Source of the DNA: Hyphochytrium catenoides
Taxonomy: Eukaryota > Protista > Hyphochytriomycota
Assembly: GCA_900088475.1 (NCBI GenBank)
Contig: FLMG01001680.1
Location: forward strand, 1 to 41,417
Reading direction: 5' to 3'
DNA length: 41,417 bases
Notes under the pieces: model-generated
What the model was told of the DNA's origin: nothing
What the model saw: only the letters and a program-made list of their open reading frames with translations
Database searches by the model: none
Part shown: positions 7,355 to 29,674 of the stretch, in pieces
Position numbering within the stretch: position 1 is the first letter of the stretch
How the letters are laid out: each line of letters opens with the position of its first letter
Made by a program: the position numbers and the translations under genes

Positions 7355-8586
7355 TCAGGTCTCCGCTGCTGCGTGTTGGCAGTGTCCACAGGTGTTCCTA
7401 ATCGCCCAAGTAGATGGCTGTCTCGCCTCCAACAAATCGTTAATAGGCAGGTGCTCATGATCTAATCTCTTTGCCCCAGCTTGATGCGTGTAGGCATGTG
7501 CCTTGCACTTAACCGCCGATTCCAAAAGATCTCGTACCATTTGGTCCTCTCCTATCTGTTGGAGAAAGAGGAGAAAAGCTGTTGCCGTCATGATCCGCTC
7601 TCCGTCATCAGGCTTCTTCCTAAGTGGTGCAGCAGCATCCGTGGCTCTGCCAGCTGAGGAGATCTTCACTCTCTGCATTGCAGGATTAATTCTTCTGTTT
7701 AGAAGGCGGGCTTGAGGCCAAGTCCCGTCCAACACTATCACCCGAAGTCTTCTCCTGCTGCACTCTAGAGCCACTCCTTGACTCTCAGCATCAGGTTTCT
7801 CCACAGGTGCCTTCCGCTTGTCTCTGAGCTCCTCCTCCGTAAACTTTTTGATGAGCTCTGTGGCATTAACCGCTTCCGCAGCCGGAAAGAGTACGATACA
7901 CATAGGAGAGGATAGTGACTCTTCGCTCTGCGAAGCTTCGCCTCTCTCATCGCAACCGCTGTTCGCTGCTTCAATGCTATGGTGACCGGGCTTCTCTCCA
8001 AAGAGCATCTTCTCTAAGGGTAGATCTCCATATAAGACGATACTGGCTCCAAATAGAGCTCGCAATAGTATACCTGTATTGCTGCCTCTACCTAGTTCTT
8101 TGTGGTGCATGTAGACTATGATGTTCTCTATATAGCGAAAGTGAGAGGAGATAGGTGCGGCAAAAAAGCCCATTGTCGACGGCACTGAGGACGCCACAGA
8201 GGAGACAGGCCTTTCTCGCTCTCCGAGAAGGATAAGCCGTCGGGCTTCACCTAGCACTTCACATATGCAGTAACCACCAAGTAGCCAGCAGTTCTCGCAC
8301 CAGTGGCCGCGAGCTAAACGGTCCCTCCACTCTCGCAACTGCACCTGACACTGTTTATGAATGAATGTAGAGGCGCTTAGTTGGGCGAAAGATAGCAGAA
8401 ATATAAGTTGCACATTTCAAGTGCAAGACGCATGAAGCCCACCTGAAGTGCTAGACGCTGCTCTCCAACAGGCAGTAGTTCAATGCCTTCATGACAGCGC
8501 TTCCTTGGCCGCGGCTGTCTTCCTCTTGGCTTCTCGTCTACCAGCTGAACGGACTCTAGACTACTATTCAATACAGAGAGCTCCAT
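7355..8586 (-). CDS. DTW-domain tRNA-uridine aminocarboxypropyltransferase (DTWD2/TapT-like)
   Basis: Contains CxxC...CxC (CENCWLLGGYCIC), MHHKELGRGSNTG, VLFP and VIVLDGTWPQA (DxTW). Probable intron 8442-8351 joins ORF 8377-8586 to ORF 7355-8413. The true start may lie further upstream. Confidence 0.85.
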
Positions 8587-9468
8587 GTCAACTTAGCTAG
8601 GCCCTCATTGCCGAGGCCCCAGAGCGCGGAACGCACTGGAGGCTCACCAATGCAGATAGAGTAAGAAGAAAGATTGAAACGGTGAAGTGACATTGGAACC
8701 TTTTGACTCTTCTGGACGGAAGAGTAAGCATCAAAGAGTGGCTTGGGTTCTTCAAGAGTGATGGGAGGCGGCATCAAGAGTCAAGAGCTGGCAGCAGAAC
8801 GATTGTAGTTTCTCGTTAATCTCGGTAAGCGATACTTTCATCATATGTTAAGCCTGTTACAGTGATGTAGACTTCGGTTCCGTGATCTATTCTAGTTAAA
8901 GTTTGGGCGTGGCTCAAAGCAACGCATAGAGCTTATCATCCACATTGTTGAGCTCATGTAGAGATAATGTACCTGACCATCCGCTGCGCCTCGTCTCTCC
9001 TTGAGCATCATTGGGCATACTTAACAGCCGTTCTGGACTGTTCACTTCTGCTCATGTCCTTCAAAAGAAGTTGCTCAGGTTATTAGGAAGTGTACTTCGT
9101 ACTTTAAAGCTCAGCTATTCTTATTATCGCTCTTTGGGTTGTGGGAAGGGGGAAGTAGGAGGAGCAGGAAGTATCTGTGCATACTCATTTATTACCTCGT
9201 CCTGTTATGATGGAGTTGGTTGTGTGCTAGCGAGAAAGGAGAGATGGGCTGAGAAGGTAGAATAAGCAGTGGCAACTAACGCACACTGACACCTCTAGCA
9301 CACTATCATACAGAAAAAGACGGACAGTTCTGGCCACACTACACTGAGAAAGCGCCTCTAGTGGTGGGCTATGCCCATAAATTAGTCTGAGAGGGCCATG
9401 TCTCACCTCCGCTCTTACCAAGAGGAGACGACCCCAGAGTGTATCTTGCAAGTCACTCTGCCTGCCTG

Positions 9469-10836
9469 CTAATGCGCTTGGGCATTAGGTGGAGGGGTTC
9501 CCAGCGAGAGGCAGAACGCATCGAGATCATCAGGTACGGGCCAACCGAGCTGTGTTAAGGTTGAATACAAGTCCCAGACTTTATCAATCTGGGAGATCAG
9601 GCCATCACCATTAAAGTGGAAAGTGTAAACGGACATTGTCTTGAAGCGCTTCGGTGGATTTGTAGGTAGTAACGGACCGGCGGGCTTGTCATGAACACCC
9701 ATGAGAAAAGCTGTGACTGTTATCCTGTTCTCATGCTGGGCAACTGAATAGTTCTCGTAGTGTAGTTGGCTGAGGACGTGTCTGTGCAGATTGAACATTA
9801 CATCCACAAACTCCTTCACTGTCTTCAGAGGCCGGAAAGCGTCGCAAATGAAAGGAGCATCCGGGACGAACTCCTTTGCCATTTCCCGCCAAGAGACACA
9901 TGCACTCATCTGATCCATGAACATAATCGCTTTCTGGATGTTCTGCTGTGGTAAATCCACGAAAGGAGAAATAGGGGATGAAGGCACTGACGCGAGACGT
10001 TTGTTCTGCTCCTCGAGCTGTCGATTCTTCTCCTCGATCATCTTCACTTTTTCCAGATCTACCGCTCGTTTGGCAAGAAGCTCCTCATACTTCCTTTGCT
10101 CTTGTGTCAATCTATCCACAGCACTTTGTAGCTGCTCAAGGTACAAACGCTTTCGCATTCTGGACTTCCTTGCATGCTCTCGATTTCGCTGCCGAATTGC
10201 CTCTGCCTTGTTATTGCTGCCATCGTCTAGATCAAACATCTGTCCCAGGTCCAGTCCACCTCTAATCGCCGCAGAGTTTCTTAAGGTCAGGTTGACCTTG
10301 TGTTCCGCCGACTTTGACGAGCTGGAGATCTCGCCCACATCTTCCATCATAACGTTTCCACCCGAATTATTCGAGTCCGTTGGGGATACATATCCAGCTT
10401 CCCCTTCCACGCCGGCGCCAATCCCCGGCGCCAACAGAGTAAAATCTGGGAAGTTGAATCCTGCAAGCTGCTGGTTGATAATGACGGGGTCTGTTGGTGC
10501 CATTAGCAAGCTCTGCATAGGGTCCTGACTTGCGACGGCTGACATCTGTCCGAAGCTGTCCATAGAGTGAGACGCTGTCGCCGCCGCAAGATGTTGGTGC
10601 TGCTGCAAGCCAAGACCTTGTGATGATCCTAATAAAATATCAATGTTTTCCAGATAGGGTTGCGTGGCAGTTGCTGCATTGCTCTGTGAATTTGGAAAAA
10701 GAGCGCTCAACGCCGCTCCGCCCCTAGCTTGAGCGACACTTTCAGCCTTCATGTGCTGTCTACCATTCGGATGGTAGAGCCCAGCCATACGGTTTAGATC
10801 ATCCTGAGAGATCATCCCGACCTGTCCGGCATTCAT
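9469..10836 (-). CDS. bZIP transcription factor with a C-terminal SnoaL/ester-cyclase-like (NTF2-fold) domain; intronless CDS
   Basis: 455-aa ORF with a Q/S/M-rich N-terminus, basic region and zipper IRQRNREHARKSRMRKRLYLEQLQSAVDRL, and a C-terminal GVHDKPAGPLLPTNPPKRFKTMSVYTFHFNGDGLISQIDKVWDLYSTLTQLGW resembling SnoaL-type cyclases. Confidence 0.85.
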   Translation of the reverse strand: MNAGQVGMISQDDLNRMAGLYHPNGRQHMKAESVAQARGGAALSALFPNSQSNAATATQPYLENIDILLGSSQGLGLQQHQHLAAATASHSMDSFGQMSAVASQDPMQSLLMAPTDPVIINQQLAGFNFPDFTLLAPGIGAGVEGEAGYVSPTDSNNSGGNVMMEDVGEISSSSKSAEHKVNLTLRNSAAIRGGLDLGQMFDLDDGSNNKAEAIRQRNREHARKSRMRKRLYLEQLQSAVDRLTQEQRKYEELLAKRAVDLEKVKMIEEKNRQLEEQNKRLASVPSSPISPFVDLPQQNIQKAIMFMDQMSACVSWREMAKEFVPDAPFICDAFRPLKTVKEFVDVMFNLHRHVLSQLHYENYSVAQHENRITVTAFLMGVHDKPAGPLLPTNPPKRFKTMSVYTFHFNGDGLISQIDKVWDLYSTLTQLGWPVPDDLDAFCLSLGTPPPNAQAH

Positions 10837-13092
10837 TCCTCAAATTCAAGTCAGCCGAGGTCTCTTTAACCTAGCAAGTTGAAGAGTCTAAGAAGCTTCT
10901 CTGTAGATCACAATTTCTCTCGGCCACGCCAAGCAGAGACGTCCTGCGAGTGTTTGTGGACAATTCACTGCATGTCAAGCAGAAAGAGGGAAAGATAGAA
11001 GGACCAAGGACTTGATTTGCAAGGCTCGTGTTTGTCAACTGGGCAAAGTGTGCCGCCGTTTAGCGAGAGGGAGCGGGAACCCGATTGAACTCTGCAAGGT
11101 AGGCAGTTCGGTGTGGACGTTGACTTATTGAGGATCTCAGATAGTGCTGAGAATTGTTCAGAGCCGCAAGCAGGAAACGATTGCGAGACAGAGGAGCTGA
11201 CACATATACCAAGCGGAACTAACAAAGAGGTGAGAAGCAAAGGAGGGAAGGGAACGCCACGTGCGAGACAGAGCGAGCGAGAGCGAGGCCCTTCCTTAAC
11301 CTTCCTATCAAGGACTAACCCGCCACTTCTGTCGGGCTCACAGGAGTGCAATGCGAGAGAAGGGGGAAGCGAGGGGGGCCGGCGATCACAATCGCCCGCA
11401 TCTGAGAGTATTACTACTTCCATTGCACTCCTAGTACATCGCTAGACAGGCAGCGGAAAGTGGTGAGCTATTACTATCTTGCAGGTTCTTGGATGGCGGC
11501 TGGGAGTGTTTGGGTCTGCCTCACTCTCACTTTTCTTTGCCCTTCTCTTTCCTGTCACAAAGTGCTTGCTGGTCTAACCCTCTCTATTCAGCGCTCTTTC
11601 TCTGTCATTATCGCGGCCCTAATTACGGCAGGAGGTTATCTCACCACTGTTCTGGCTAGCGCTCTGTCTCGTGCTTTGTCTTGTTGCTCTTCCTCCTGTT
11701 CTTCTGTCCTTCTTCTTGCTTCCATCTTGAGCTTCCGAAAAAAGCTTGCAGCCTGGGCCTTTCCCTCCTTCCCTTTCCCACCTCTTCCTCTCAACCCGTG
11801 CCCGTTTCCTTTACTCAGTCGTTCGCTCCTGTTCCGTGTTCTTTGCCTCGGTTGAGTCTTTTTATACTTCTCTCCTGCTGCTGTTGGGGTCATAGGCCTC
11901 ACCACCACAAGTACAGTGTGTTGTAATAAGGGGAACTGGGTGGGATCAAGGATGGGTAAATGGATGTTTAGGACATGAGCAGAAGACCAGCACTTCTCAC
12001 TTCTCATTATCAAACAGGTTTATTCTTCAGAACCCGAGAAGAGGTGCCTGTTCCTTTTGGCTGCTTGTTGTTTGGCAAAGAGCGAGCTATGATGATTCCT
12101 TCACACTTTGTACCTGTACTTGTAAGATAGGGACTTGCACCTCGTACAGTAGCAAACGCGCCTTTCTCACACTTCTTCCCACTGTCCGCATGATTCGAGA
12201 AAGGGCCTTTCCCTTCATTCCTAGGAACTACTACCCGTAGCGGAATAACTCACATCCTAGTGGCGGGATCTAATGGTGGTATATATCGCTACGCCGACCG
12301 GTAAATACCGCTTAGGCTTGTGCCTTCTGGATAGTTCATACCGTAATTGAACCACAGTTACCTGGTAGAAATCAAACATGTGAGAGAGGCAGGAGGTACC
12401 TTGCCACCTGCTTCATTCTAAAAAGACAGAGCAACATTTTCCTCAGGCACAAAGGAGAAGTACAAAAAGTGGCCCTGACCCTACTGCAGAGTATACTATG
12501 GGGCAGTAGATATAAGGGGCATTGGGGGTGACTCTTACGAGGAGGCTAGACGAAGGGAGAAAGTGAAGCAGACCAGAAAGTAGCCCCAGAAGTGCTACAT
12601 GAATCAATAATAGGTTATCACAGGCATAAAGGGATGATTACTGCAGAGCGTTGAGCATTGGGAGTTACTTTGTGATGACAGGTCCTCAGCTTCTTATTAT
12701 TACTTTGACGTTTCGACGTCTGTTTGTGCCCCGATGGAGTTGACCGGTAGTCACAGGAGCGCTGGGCCTGCTGCACAGTTCCTCTCGATGGATCTTCACT
12801 TTTCAAGGGTTATACTCTTCTCCTGCCGTCCTCACCATAGCTTATGGCGTCATTTCTGAAGGCGTAAGGTGAATCCCGCGTGGTGGACTACCAGACAGCT
12901 TATAAGAGATAAAGATCCTTGTTGGGGGTACGGAGGAACGCGTGTGGGTGCTCTTCTACTGCTCAGTAAAGACTGACTCTAGAGAGCCTCGGACCTTCTC
13001 GTAAGAATGAGAGCAAGTGTTATTGTTCCTACAGCGGTAGATAAAAAACGTTAGGGCTTCCTTGTGAACATCCTAAAGCGGGGAGCACCAAG

Positions 13093-26472: not shown

Positions 26473-29400
26473 CTACTTAACTGCGGAGAAGAAGATGCAA
26501 TCATAGACAACATGCATCATGGACCTCACATCTCGCGTGTAGCAACTCTCTCTTGACTCTTCTCTCTGCCGCACGCAGAATGAGCAAGGTAGAAGTAAGT
26601 CTCGACCATCAAGGTGGAGAAAGAGACGGAACCCATCCATCAGAAAGAAGAGCATCTCCACCAAGGAGACAAAAGGTTTGCTAGTGCTGTTCTACATACC
26701 TCAATCTTGAACCCACTTGTTTGCATCGCCTGGCGTACGTCCTCCCAACTGAGCTCTATAGAGGCTGCATATCTGTCATCGTCAGGTTCATGGTCACCCG
26801 ATCCCTGCCAGTGATAGAGCAGCGGACCTGCAATGGGGTGGTAAGAGAACCTAATCCAAGCGCAGTAGCCAAGAAACAGTTTGCACAGTTGATTTCTAAA
26901 AGGCTCATCGTGGGCGCTCTTGCACTTTCGTGCTTGGTGCTGCTAGATCTATCCTTCTGATAATACACTGGCTTACCAAAGTTAATCCACCGTCCTCCCG
27001 GCCTCAGGATGCGATGGATGGTCTCAATGTAGGTCAAGACGTTGGGCGCCGTGTCCAGGAAGAAGCATGTCACAATTGCATCCCACGATTCTGAAAGTGA
27101 AGTTGTCATTGGTAGAACCAAGAGCCACAGTGAAAAGGTTTTATAGAGAGAAAGCAGTCGAGGGTGGACTATCCGCGAGAGACCGAGAGCTGACTAGAGA
27201 GTTTTCGCTTCTTCCAGGTATAGGGCTCAGTCCTATAGAGGTAGCCATCTACTGAAGCACAAGAGGACCTTGAAGCGTCAACGGAGAAAGACCAGCGACC
27301 AGAAGACTACTTTTGACTGTCATCACCTGGGTGGTTGCCGTAAATTTCAAGAAATTCTCCGGCTGCCATAGAGAACTGAGGTCGATTTCCACTCTCTCCG
27401 TCTAGCAGGGAGGAGGGGCAAACATCTGGGATCCGAACACCCCGCAGGTGATCAAAGGCTCCTCGGTTGTTGGACGGATTGTCAATCCAAGGGAAGATTT
27501 CTTGTTCATTGGGCTCACTTGTACTATGCGGTAGAAAGACAAAGGACCATTTGAGAGGTTGAACTTGAAAAGAACCCATTGGCTAGCCCATGAGGCTGAA
27601 GAAGAAGTAGATTCTTTTAAATTGGTAGGGCAAAATAAAGAAGAGATAGACCAGATCACGCAGCACGAGATGGGAAAGTTCTTACCAGTTTAGTAAGAAA
27701 TTGCTTGTGAGAAGCATGAAGTAAGAAAACTCATTCCCTTGACATTCATAGCCTGTGAGACGCGTGTCATAGCGTGTGAGACGGATGTCGTAGAGGGGCG
27801 TGTTAGCCTCGACTTTCTGCTGGATTTTATGGGTAGGAACCCAAAAGAATCAAGAACAATCCGAAGAGATAGAGGGAAGGCAGAACGATGAAGGCCTAAA
27901 GAAAGCTCAACTAGCAATGCCCGGAAGTATATTCAAAAATGGTACAGCTATAATGAGCTAATGGGGTTACCTCTCGCCGCTATCTCTAAGGGCAGCCTTC
28001 CCAGTCCTGAGCCTGGTACTAGAACCTGGAGTGGCCGAGAAGAGGATTCTGGCGGTAGTACCCTAACAAGTTCCTCTATTAAAGGACCATAGCACTGATC
28101 TCTTTCCGCTTTGCCCTACAAACAGCGCCAAAATGAGAAGCGGCGCCAGAAGTGTTACAAGTGCCAAGGTCTCATACGGACATGGATTTCGGGAGACGCA
28201 AGACAGGAACAGGTGGAGACATAGATTTGTATGTTGACTTTACCTCTTCAGACCAATCCCTGACGCATTGGTGCAGCGTGCTCTTCAGTTTACTGAAGTG
28301 TCGCTCCGGACTGACGATATTCTTGTCTCTGGGAGGACGGGGAGGATAGGAGTCGTCGTCTCCCGTAGGTCCAAACCCTTTATTCCTGTTCACTATCACG
28401 TTGAGAAAGAGCTGATTCTGCTGTATAGCTCTCTGCGGAGGAAGGAGACGGTAAGACCTTAGGGACAGATGACTGAGTGATGATGCTATCTGCGTCTACT
28501 CTAGCACCGTTCACTGTTGCTACCAGCTCACTCAGATCCATGCTCACCAACTCTCTATGTTACATCATTCCTCGCACCTTCATCTGCGCTTTCCGGCTCT
28601 CGTAGGTGCTGTATAACTTTTTATGACTTTCACTAAGATTCCGGTAGGCGCGCTCTCGACGGAAGAGCTCTCGCAGCATGAACTTGAAATACTCCTAATG
28701 GCGAGACAATGCTTTCAGCCACTGTGCTGTATAGGCCAGAAAGAGAGAAGAGAGAACGAAGAAGAGTAGCAGTCGGCAGGGCGAAACAGCGGTAGACAAA
28801 GCGAGTGATGCTATACCAGCAGACGGGGCGCAAGCACTTGAGCATTAAAACCCTTTGCCAAAAAGAGTGAGAAAGGCCTCGCGGAGATTGAGAACATGAG
28901 AAACAAAACGGTCATGGGACAATGCTAAGAAAGGCATGGGACGGGTGCTACCTGGAAAGATACGACCACGGAGTTGAAATGCTCGATCTCTGCCAGCATT
29001 TCCTCCTCAGGCACGCCATACCCGTGATCATGACCATGGTGGTGATCGTGATCGTGACTATGACCGTGGTCTATGCAGGAGTGGCCGTGTCCTTGATGTT
29101 GATGAGAAGCATGACGGGAGTCATCGGCTAATGGTCGCACTAGATACGTGCATTCTTCGTCCTCGAAGTACTTTAAAAAGCCTGAACGCAGATAGAGGTG
29201 CAGCGCGTCTTGCCACACTGTGTTCGTCTCTACTAGGATGTGGGTCATGCCTTGCTGGTGTGCTTGCAGAAGAAGATCTGCGGTGATGGCCTTGCCCACT
29301 CCCTGGCCACGGTATTCTCTCTTCACTGACATCCGCACTAGGCGCCCACAGAGAGCCGATGGTGGCAGCTGAGGAGGCAAGGGCATCTCACCCTTATCTC

Positions 29401-29674
29401 TGATAAGTATCCCGACGCCAATCAACTGCCCTTTCAACCACACAGTGCGGATGAAGCCTCCCTCCGCGACATAATAAGAGTGCAGGTCGTTAATGTCAGG
29501 ATTTCGGGTCAGGTCCGTCTGCTCTCCCCACCGCTCAGTGATGCCCTGCACAAGAAGGTCTCGGACCTGCCCTTGGTCTTGGGATTGAAAGGATTTGAAA
29601 GCACATTGGCTAAGGAGATCGCTGGACCCAGCACTGGCCGGCTTCGCCTTCTGTGTCCGTCGATGCTTGCCCAT
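26473..29674 (-). CDS. CARNMT1: GNAT acetyltransferase + His-rich linker + carnosine N-methyltransferase (N2227/CARNMT1) fusion, ~9 exons
   Basis: Exon 1 (29674-28952) holds the GNAT domain (RMSVKREYRGQGVG...ALHLYLRSGF), the His tract and EIEHFNSVVVSFQ. Later exons give [94 protein letters not shown] and SIELSWEDV, with the stop at 26473. Confidence 0.9.

Follow-up and report, generated by a model that had tools for sequence, protein, structure and literature searches.

A bZIP protein of Hyphochytrium catenoides with a C-terminal SnoaL-like domain: a candidate metabolite-responsive transcription factor

The 41,417-nucleotide (nt) contig FLMG01001680.1 of Hyphochytrium catenoides, here called the window, carries on its reverse strand at 9469–10836 an ATG-started open reading frame (ORF) of 455 amino acids in which a basic leucine zipper (bZIP) is followed by a C-terminal domain of the SnoaL-like nuclear transport factor 2 (NTF2) fold. 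Sequence and structure comparisons show the predicted product to be a dimeric transcription factor of the bZIP class, from a small family of stramenopile type. The order of domains and the fold of the tail, both proposed in an earlier note made from the DNA letters alone, can be stated with high confidence, as a family profile of the bZIP segment retrieved only bZIP structures and the tail superimposes on SnoaL-type structures with Z scores of 15–16. The protein may be a one-component regulator that responds to a metabolite. Its features, all on the reverse strand, are as follows.

9469–10836 (−): whole coding sequence, 455 codons plus a stop at 9469–9471, apparently a single exon.
10204–10836 (−): N-terminal low-complexity region (residues 1–211), rich in A, G, S, L and Q, from composition.
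10141–10203 (−): bZIP basic region (residues 212–232), N218-x7-R226, sequence RQRNREHARKSRMRKR, from Pfam, PDB matches and the family alignment.
9982–10140 (−): leucine zipper and extended coiled coil (residues 233–285), from heptads and the family alignment.
9949–9981 (−): Pro/Ser-rich linker (residues 286–296, PSSPISPFVDLP), from the sequence and from low predicted local distance difference test (pLDDT) values before model residue 17.
9535–9948 (−): SnoaL-like NTF2-fold domain (residues 297–434), from an AlphaFold2 (AF2) model, Foldseek, VIA-align and profile matches.
9472–9534 (−): C-terminal tail (residues 435–455), not conserved, with a short predicted helix at residues 438–445, from the alignment and the model.

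The basic region contains the defining N-x7-R arrangement as N218-REHARKS-R226, and the motif RNREHARKSRMRKR lies at residues 217–230 (nt about 10147–10188). Pfam bZIP_1 matched residues 214–252 (E = 2e-4, 21.7 bits, below the cut-off of 27.6) and bZIP_2 matched with E = 2e-3 (18.4 bits, below the cut-off of 22.3), and a phmmer comparison with the PDB gave in-register alignments to TGA7 (E = 0.0035), GCN4 and CREB, the closest solved basic region being that of plant TGA7 (NREAARKSRLRKKAYVQQLE against NREHARKSRMRKRLYLEQLQ). When the bZIP segments of seven family members were combined into a profile, all 18 PDB matches at E<0.01 were bZIP structures, aligned in register and including GCN4, CREB, Fos, Jun, TGA7 and C/EBP. 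Because the contact residues NRE-HA-RKSR resemble those of TGA, CREB and GCN4, a site of ACGT/TGACG type is the expected target of the basic region. The assignment to the aureochrome type, made in the earlier note, stays putative.

Together with the basic region the coiled coil covers residues 212–285 (about 8 heptads), and residues 207–284 contain neither Pro nor Gly. The first zipper leucine, L236, stands 10 residues past R226, the same spacing as in GCN4. Two heptad registers can be followed, the first at about residues 230–257 (d positions L, L, Y, R, V; a positions L, V, Q, L, L) and the second, after a shift, at about residues 258–282 (d positions I, L, L; a positions V, N, N), and the second segment, with the pattern N-x2-L-x3-N-x2-L, is common to related proteins of Triparma and of Tara Oceans contigs (P0016). 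Ahead of the bZIP the relatives have just 50–70 residues, compared with 211 here; this stretch gave no Pfam match over residues 1–211 and is probably a disordered activation or regulatory region, judging from its composition.

The expectation that the C-terminal domain would model as a SnoaL/NTF2 fold was borne out. AF2 prediction with the family alignment of the domain (A1) reached a pLDDT of 92.2 and a predicted template modelling score of 0.84, and was used in place of a single-sequence model (pLDDT 50), which was set aside. The modelled topology is three helices followed by a curved antiparallel sheet, an alpha+beta cone. Foldseek returned 321 PDB matches at E<0.001, headed by SnoaL2 and KstA15 (template modelling (TM) scores by target of 0.79–0.80) and followed by AknH, PhzA/B and limonene epoxide hydrolase, and VIA-align gave Z scores of 16.2 for IdmH (root-mean-square deviation (rmsd) 2.4 Å over 131 residues), 16.1 for KstA15 and 15.2 for SnoaL. 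Models of ESM-Atlas SnoaL clusters reached TM scores of 0.88–0.89 to the domain. Every one of the top structural matches acts on or binds a small molecule; they comprise polyketide cyclases and hydroxylases, ketosteroid isomerase, limonene epoxide hydrolase and a designed cortisol binder.

Profile comparisons point the same way. Pfam SnoaL_2 matched the single protein with E = 7e-4 (20.7 bits, below the cut-off of 27), SnoaL with E = 0.056 and TIGR02096 (ketosteroid isomerase-related) with E = 0.01; three relatives (P0001, P0021 and P0056) exceed the Pfam cut-offs for SnoaL/SnoaL_2, and the subfamily profile from A1 matched KstA15 (2.9e-10), SnoaL2 (1.7e-9) and AclR (6e-7) in the PDB. The C-terminal pattern described in the earlier note is present as GVHDKPAGPLLPTNPPKRFKTMSVYTFHFNGDGLISQIDKVWDLYSTLTQLGW at residues 380–432, and the motifs follow one another as H382 in G-x-H, a long loop at residues 383–395 (DKPAGPLLPTNPP), Y404, K419-V-W-D422 and Q429-L-G-W432.

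The label 'SnoaL/ester-cyclase-like' under which the domain was first described holds for the fold and fails for the chemistry. The active-site residues H35, E106, H119 and D121 of SnoaL2 correspond to H49, E119, H131 and D133 of KstA15 (PMC12939968), and in a hidden Markov model alignment to KstA15 (8r20_A) the positions of E119, H131 and D133 are occupied by Y404, I417 and K419, the fourth catalytic residue (H35/H49) lying outside the aligned part. With the catalytic E/H/D replaced by Y/I/K, the protein is therefore not a true polyketide or ester cyclase. Throughout the subfamily these positions align with the second Tyr of a YVY motif, a hydrophobic residue and the Lys of KVWD, and stand-alone proteins conserve the pocket-aligned Tyr in 81%, the Lys in 87% and H382 in 87% of cases. 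The subfamily thus has its own conserved residue set at the pocket-aligned positions, of which Y404 and K419 are retained in the present protein.

That the ORF is a real gene follows from its unbroken frame, from the confinement of indels to its flanks and from the predominance of synonymous variants. The earlier description of one continuous ORF with a low-complexity N-terminus agrees with the ORF listing of the window, and the positions first given for the two domains were correct to about 10–20 nt. An in-frame TGA precedes the ATG by 6 nt, and at the base composition of the window the chance of 455 stop-free codons is about 3e-10, that of the 213 codons ahead of the bZIP about 4e-5. Contigs of DNA and RNA libraries were compared over 8800–11600 (2,801 letters). 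A DNA contig from an independent run with the same organism label (X1) spans 9482–11369; within the ORF it has two substitutions and is free of indels, and it shows 4-, 3- and 2-nt indels up to 260 nt upstream; one allele has a 4-nt deletion just beyond the stop. Six variants were found in DNA or RNA libraries, four of them synonymous, while the other two change a loop residue (G410V) and a linker residue (I289T), a pattern of the purifying kind. The ORF is a genuine coding gene, apparently with a single exon. A chance ORF and a read-through of two genes are both very improbable in view of the collinear homologues described below and of the variant pattern.

Six contigs from RNA libraries, each of 151 nt, matched within 9464–10053 at 98–99% identity; they derive from three studies, namely the soil metatranscriptome X4, the plant-associated metatranscriptome X8 and X7, which is probably an RNA run. 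The junction between coiled coil and NTF2-fold domain is bridged without gap or intron by three of the six (9855–10005, 9880–10030 and 9903–10053), which supports, short of proof, that the junction is transcribed and unspliced.

Some further observations concern the same reads and strand. Logan contigs of X1 form two variants at 9361–9511 and 11340–11509, of similar depth (178/188 and 83/165) and differing by 6–8 substitutions and small indels in the non-coding flanks, which suggests two alleles of a heterozygous diploid. Libraries with a small share of the sequence come from soil, rhizosphere and plant samples, and no record of the exact 455-residue protein was present in the contig collection. 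An antisense ATG ORF of 203 residues (9917–10528, + strand) has no family support and was read as a shadow ORF of the coding strand.

The same architecture recurs in a small set of proteins, in which six bZIP-linked clusters were recognised: P0016/P0045, P0025, P0038/P0057 and P0019, and two from Triparma. P0016/P0045 is an unnamed 348-residue protein on Tara Oceans and other marine contigs of up to 379 kb, P0025 lies on a transcript-like 1.56-kb Logan contig, and the Triparma members (GMI46057.1 of T. columacea; GMH52125.1/GMH71306.1 of T. laevis), which make the named fused relatives stramenopiles, carry only the name 'BZIP domain-containing protein'. In tblastn comparisons P0016, P0053 and P0054 gave continuous alignments that start in the basic region and reach the end of the NTF2-fold domain (nt 10194–9535; E = 6e-28 to 3e-21), and the full-length family alignment (A2) is collinear with the present protein, with R215, S225, R226, L261, F306, G380, H382, G387, P391, P394, F408, I414, Q429, G431 and W432 invariant in the fused family. 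The Triparma and P0016/P0045 proteins share with it the basic region, long coiled coil, linker and NTF2-like domain, including the pattern G-x-H...P..PP...F...I...QLGW, at 25–30% identity; they differ in their short N-termini, and Triparma also in a Q at the position of H221 and a TTKHEGKK insert in the last hairpin.

A maximum-likelihood tree of 39 domain copies, including all rows of A1, with P0053 and P0054 represented by the fragments P0013 and P0023, placed the eight bZIP-linked copies on one side of a single branch (support 83/91; 95% of bootstrap trees), and the bZIP label required one change on the tree against a mean of 6.1 after shuffling. These results point to a single old fusion that was then kept, with which the unrooted tree is consistent without proving it.

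Several positions have changed within the fused clade: E-x-GKGW has decayed (to ACVSW in the present protein), the first Tyr of YVY has become A, T, S or V, the W of KVWD is F in most members and QLGW is now invariant. The present protein has GVHDK where stand-alone proteins have GTHTG, and is conservative at Y404 and K419-V-W-D422. Such changes would suit a former enzyme or binder that has become a regulator, and would fit either a diversified ligand specificity or a relaxed constraint on the pocket.

One fused relative has a further domain. P0019 (L006:104–2044, JGI metagenome 3300045300; 646 residues) begins with a LOV-like domain in which the motif GKNCNFLQ keeps the adduct Cys, and all PDB matches of this region are LOV domains, PtAUREO1a among them (E about 1e-4). 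Its order is LOV-like domain, bZIP-like region (QQKCAFTRKSR, with the invariant Asn changed to Lys), long acidic/Ser spacer and NTF2-like tail, so that the LOV stands on the opposite side of the bZIP from that in aureochromes. P0038, P0051 and P0057 resemble 5'-truncated versions of the P0019 type.

The domain itself belongs to a small and mostly protist subfamily. A HMMER scan of residues 281–455 against 1.84 billion cluster representatives retrieved just 44 proteins at E<1e-3, the best of them 30–35% identical and none above 35%. Their signature reads A..FF...E.GKGW...ATF.C...GTHTG.GGPV.P..PPK.....YVY...F...GKI....KVWD........GWP, from which the present protein keeps G-x-H, the GP..P..PP loop, Y404, KVWD and GW. 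The domain had at first been called bacterial-looking, a description that did not survive: its nearest relatives are eukaryotic protist proteins of Balamuthia, Sulcionema and Triparma, and bacterial SnoaL2-type enzymes match at profile and fold level only. A recent bacterial transfer was rejected, the nearest kin being eukaryotic.

The Balamuthia mandrillaris member stands alone and is named 'polyketide cyclase', and that of Sulcionema specki has three tandem copies together with an AMP-binding (acyl-activating) enzyme. In other members the domain is fused to an aldehyde dehydrogenase, to GST or to an FTO-like dioxygenase with a zinc ribbon, or occurs only as two or three tandem copies (tandem and enzyme-fused proteins: P0001, P0014, P0021, P0056, P0022 and P0031). 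Since these partners act on carboxylic acids, aldehydes and electrophiles, the company that the domain keeps suggests that it handles small molecules.

Other searches were less productive. A word-index protein search with the whole protein gave no match, although this blank says little, the index seemingly being swamped by low-complexity and coiled-coil words; the same limitation applies to a search with the two family alignments, which returned P0038 and P0057 alone, and a single-protein search of JGI metagenomes found no relative. An ESM-Atlas feature search with residues 200–455 ranked an unnamed oomycete cluster of 253 residues first (score 0.89) and, sixth, a 1,514-member oomycete bZIP cluster with the Pfam domain PF27643 (BZP1_C; score 0.81); the tail alone retrieved bacterial SnoaL clusters only. 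If BZP1_C shares its fold with the present tail, the novelty of the architecture would be lower.

We propose that the protein acts as a ligand-gated, one-component metabolite-responsive bZIP, a tentative reading to which we would give slightly less than an even chance. The zipper is predicted to be an unbroken helix of about 78 residues, after which an 11-residue Pro-rich linker leads into the SnoaL-like domain; as the zipper would be parallel and the linker is short, the two NTF2-fold domains of a dimer would be set side by side. The tail would be the regulatory module, and a putative small hydrophobic metabolite in its cone pocket would alter dimer geometry, DNA binding or the recruitment of partners. 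Several points weigh against this proposal. The Pfam scores of the single protein for bZIP and SnoaL_2 both fall under the gathering cut-offs, the RNA-library contigs stop short of the basic region, and metatranscriptomes can contain DNA. Some NTF2-like domains have no role beyond oligomerisation or the binding of proteins. E-x-GKGW and the first Tyr are lost from the fused clade, which also varies at the pocket-aligned positions (K/H/L/V and Y/F), and the LOV-like N-terminus of P0019 raises the prospect that sensing may lie elsewhere than in the NTF2-like tail.

The last two points also speak for the main alternative, which we regard as possible rather than probable, namely that the tail is a ligand-independent structural module, either a second dimerisation or partner-selection interface that stabilises zipper dimers or sorts them among the many paralogues, or a docking site for a kinase or co-regulator. 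NTF2-fold hub and heterodimer domains are known elsewhere, NTF2-like folds commonly dimerise, and the domain here sits 11 residues behind a parallel zipper. The SnoaL_2 tail of the sigma factor sigma-J works through contacts within the protein, with no known ligand (PMC5766207). A purely structural role is harder to reconcile with the invariance of H382 and of the long GP..P..PP loop across the fused clade, with the retention here of Y404 and KVWD as in stand-alone proteins, and with the enzyme fusions of the subfamily, which point to small-molecule handling. Those same fusions, and the strong conservation of H, Y, K, W and D in the stand-alone proteins, would suit a tail that is still an enzyme, making the protein a moonlighting enzyme–transcription factor of isomerase, hydratase or cyclase type with a catalytic set unlike that of SnoaL; NTF2-fold enzymes do use many catalytic sets, with ketosteroid isomerase, limonene epoxide hydrolase and SnoaL all among the matches. 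We consider this improbable given the Y/I/K in place of the SnoaL2/KstA15 E/H/D, the change from GTHTG to GVHDK, the loss of GKGW and the oddity of a nuclear DNA-bound enzyme. Very improbable, finally, is that the tail controls localisation by an NTF2-type contact with the nuclear transport machinery, or that the ORF is an artefact in which two genes or a pseudogene are read as one. The former draws on the naming of the fold after nuclear transport factor 2, but the domain falls in the SnoaL branch and not in NTF2 proper; the latter could appeal to the lack of a full-length transcript among the RNA-library contigs, but the frame is unbroken with indels only in the flanks, the collinear architecture recurs in Triparma and Tara Oceans contigs, and RNA-library contigs span the junction.

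The proposed metabolite-responsive bZIP is comparable to several known systems: the aureochromes with LOV, bZIP–PAS factors, TGA factors, and sigma-J with its SnoaL_2 tail. Aureochromes are stramenopile bZIP–LOV proteins that respond to blue light, and the likeness in domain order noticed at the outset, zipper first and sensor-type alpha/beta domain last, is confirmed, and a stramenopile distribution is a further point in common. The present tail, however, has an NTF2 fold and no flavin site, and Pfam gave no match in the protein to PAS or to LOV, the domain that in aureochromes carries the flavin-binding Cys (GxNCRFLQ). The C-terminal domain of TGA factors is all-helical. These plant proteins (8gyz, 7tac) likewise join a bZIP to a folded C-terminal regulatory domain, which is not homologous to NTF2. 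The bZIP–PAS factors of oomycetes and diatoms, such as PsBZPc32 and PlBZP32 (PMC4046829; PMC7273347), also carry a small C-terminal sensor-type domain, of PAS fold there and of NTF2 fold here.

Among these systems sigma-J of Mycobacterium tuberculosis, a transcription protein with a SnoaL-type tail, would by analogy come closest as a functional precedent. Removal of its SnoaL_2 tail impairs promoter binding, and its authors liken it to one-component systems (PMC5766207). This ECF41 factor resembles the present protein as a DNA-binding transcription protein with a C-terminal SnoaL-type NTF2 domain, and differs in being bacterial, in having sigma2/sigma4 in place of a bZIP, in its independent fusion and in having no known ligand; no sigma domain was found in the present protein with Pfam or NCBIfam. 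The enzymes SnoaL, SnoaL2, KstA15, AknH and IdmH (PF07366, PF12680) share the fold (Z 15–16, rmsd 2.4–3.3 Å over 131–139 residues) and a profile-level likeness that includes the G-T-H...P-T loop; unlike them, the present protein is eukaryotic, fused to a bZIP and without the catalytic E/H/D.

In the window (about 49% GC) just five ORFs reach at least 200 residues, so that the other genes must be mostly intron-split or the region gene-poor, and the intronless gene of 455 residues stands out among the ORFs of these 41 kb. A neighbouring ORF of 352 residues (7355–8413, −) has a DTW domain (PF03942, E = 2e-18) and is presumably a DTWD-type tRNA-modifying enzyme, and one of 249 residues (28925–29674, −) has a GNAT acetyltransferase domain (E = 3.5e-10).

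The literature search found no description of a protein combining bZIP and SnoaL/NTF2-like domains, yielding only papers in which the terms co-occur without connection, in line with the initial impression that no characterised example is known, and the one paper found in the stramenopile literature that names both reports SnoaL with LOV and not with bZIP. A census of Phytophthora sojae bZIPs reports no extra domain in 70 of 71 (PMC4046829). The pairing appears to be rare, shared, as far as the database comparisons go, with a few marine algae. The protein joins the known class of bZIPs with a C-terminal sensor-type domain, in which the SnoaL-like tail is the new element.

To our knowledge, only a few families of eukaryotic transcription factors are well understood in their direct control by small molecules. 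These include nuclear receptors, bHLH–PAS factors and some fungal zinc-cluster and plant factors. If the proposed reading is true, a bZIP with a built-in SnoaL-type pocket would be a new class of sensor in the stramenopiles, a group that includes major marine algae and oomycete-like protists and whose gene regulation is poorly known. It would also provide a compact ligand-to-DNA module that synthetic biology might use; NTF2 cones are already popular scaffolds for designed binders. Even if the tail served dimerisation only, the family would still show cleanly how a transcription factor can take up an enzyme fold a single time and keep it across distant lineages. In its widest form, which we think doubtful, the proposal is that stramenopile-type protists may have a family of metabolite-gated one-component bZIPs, in which a SnoaL-like pocket domain, taken up a single time from a protist family of enzymes or binders, reads a small hydrophobic molecule and sets the activity of the zipper dimer, and to which one branch may add an N-terminal LOV light sensor. 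In function, such a family would parallel both the nuclear receptors and the one-component regulators of bacteria.

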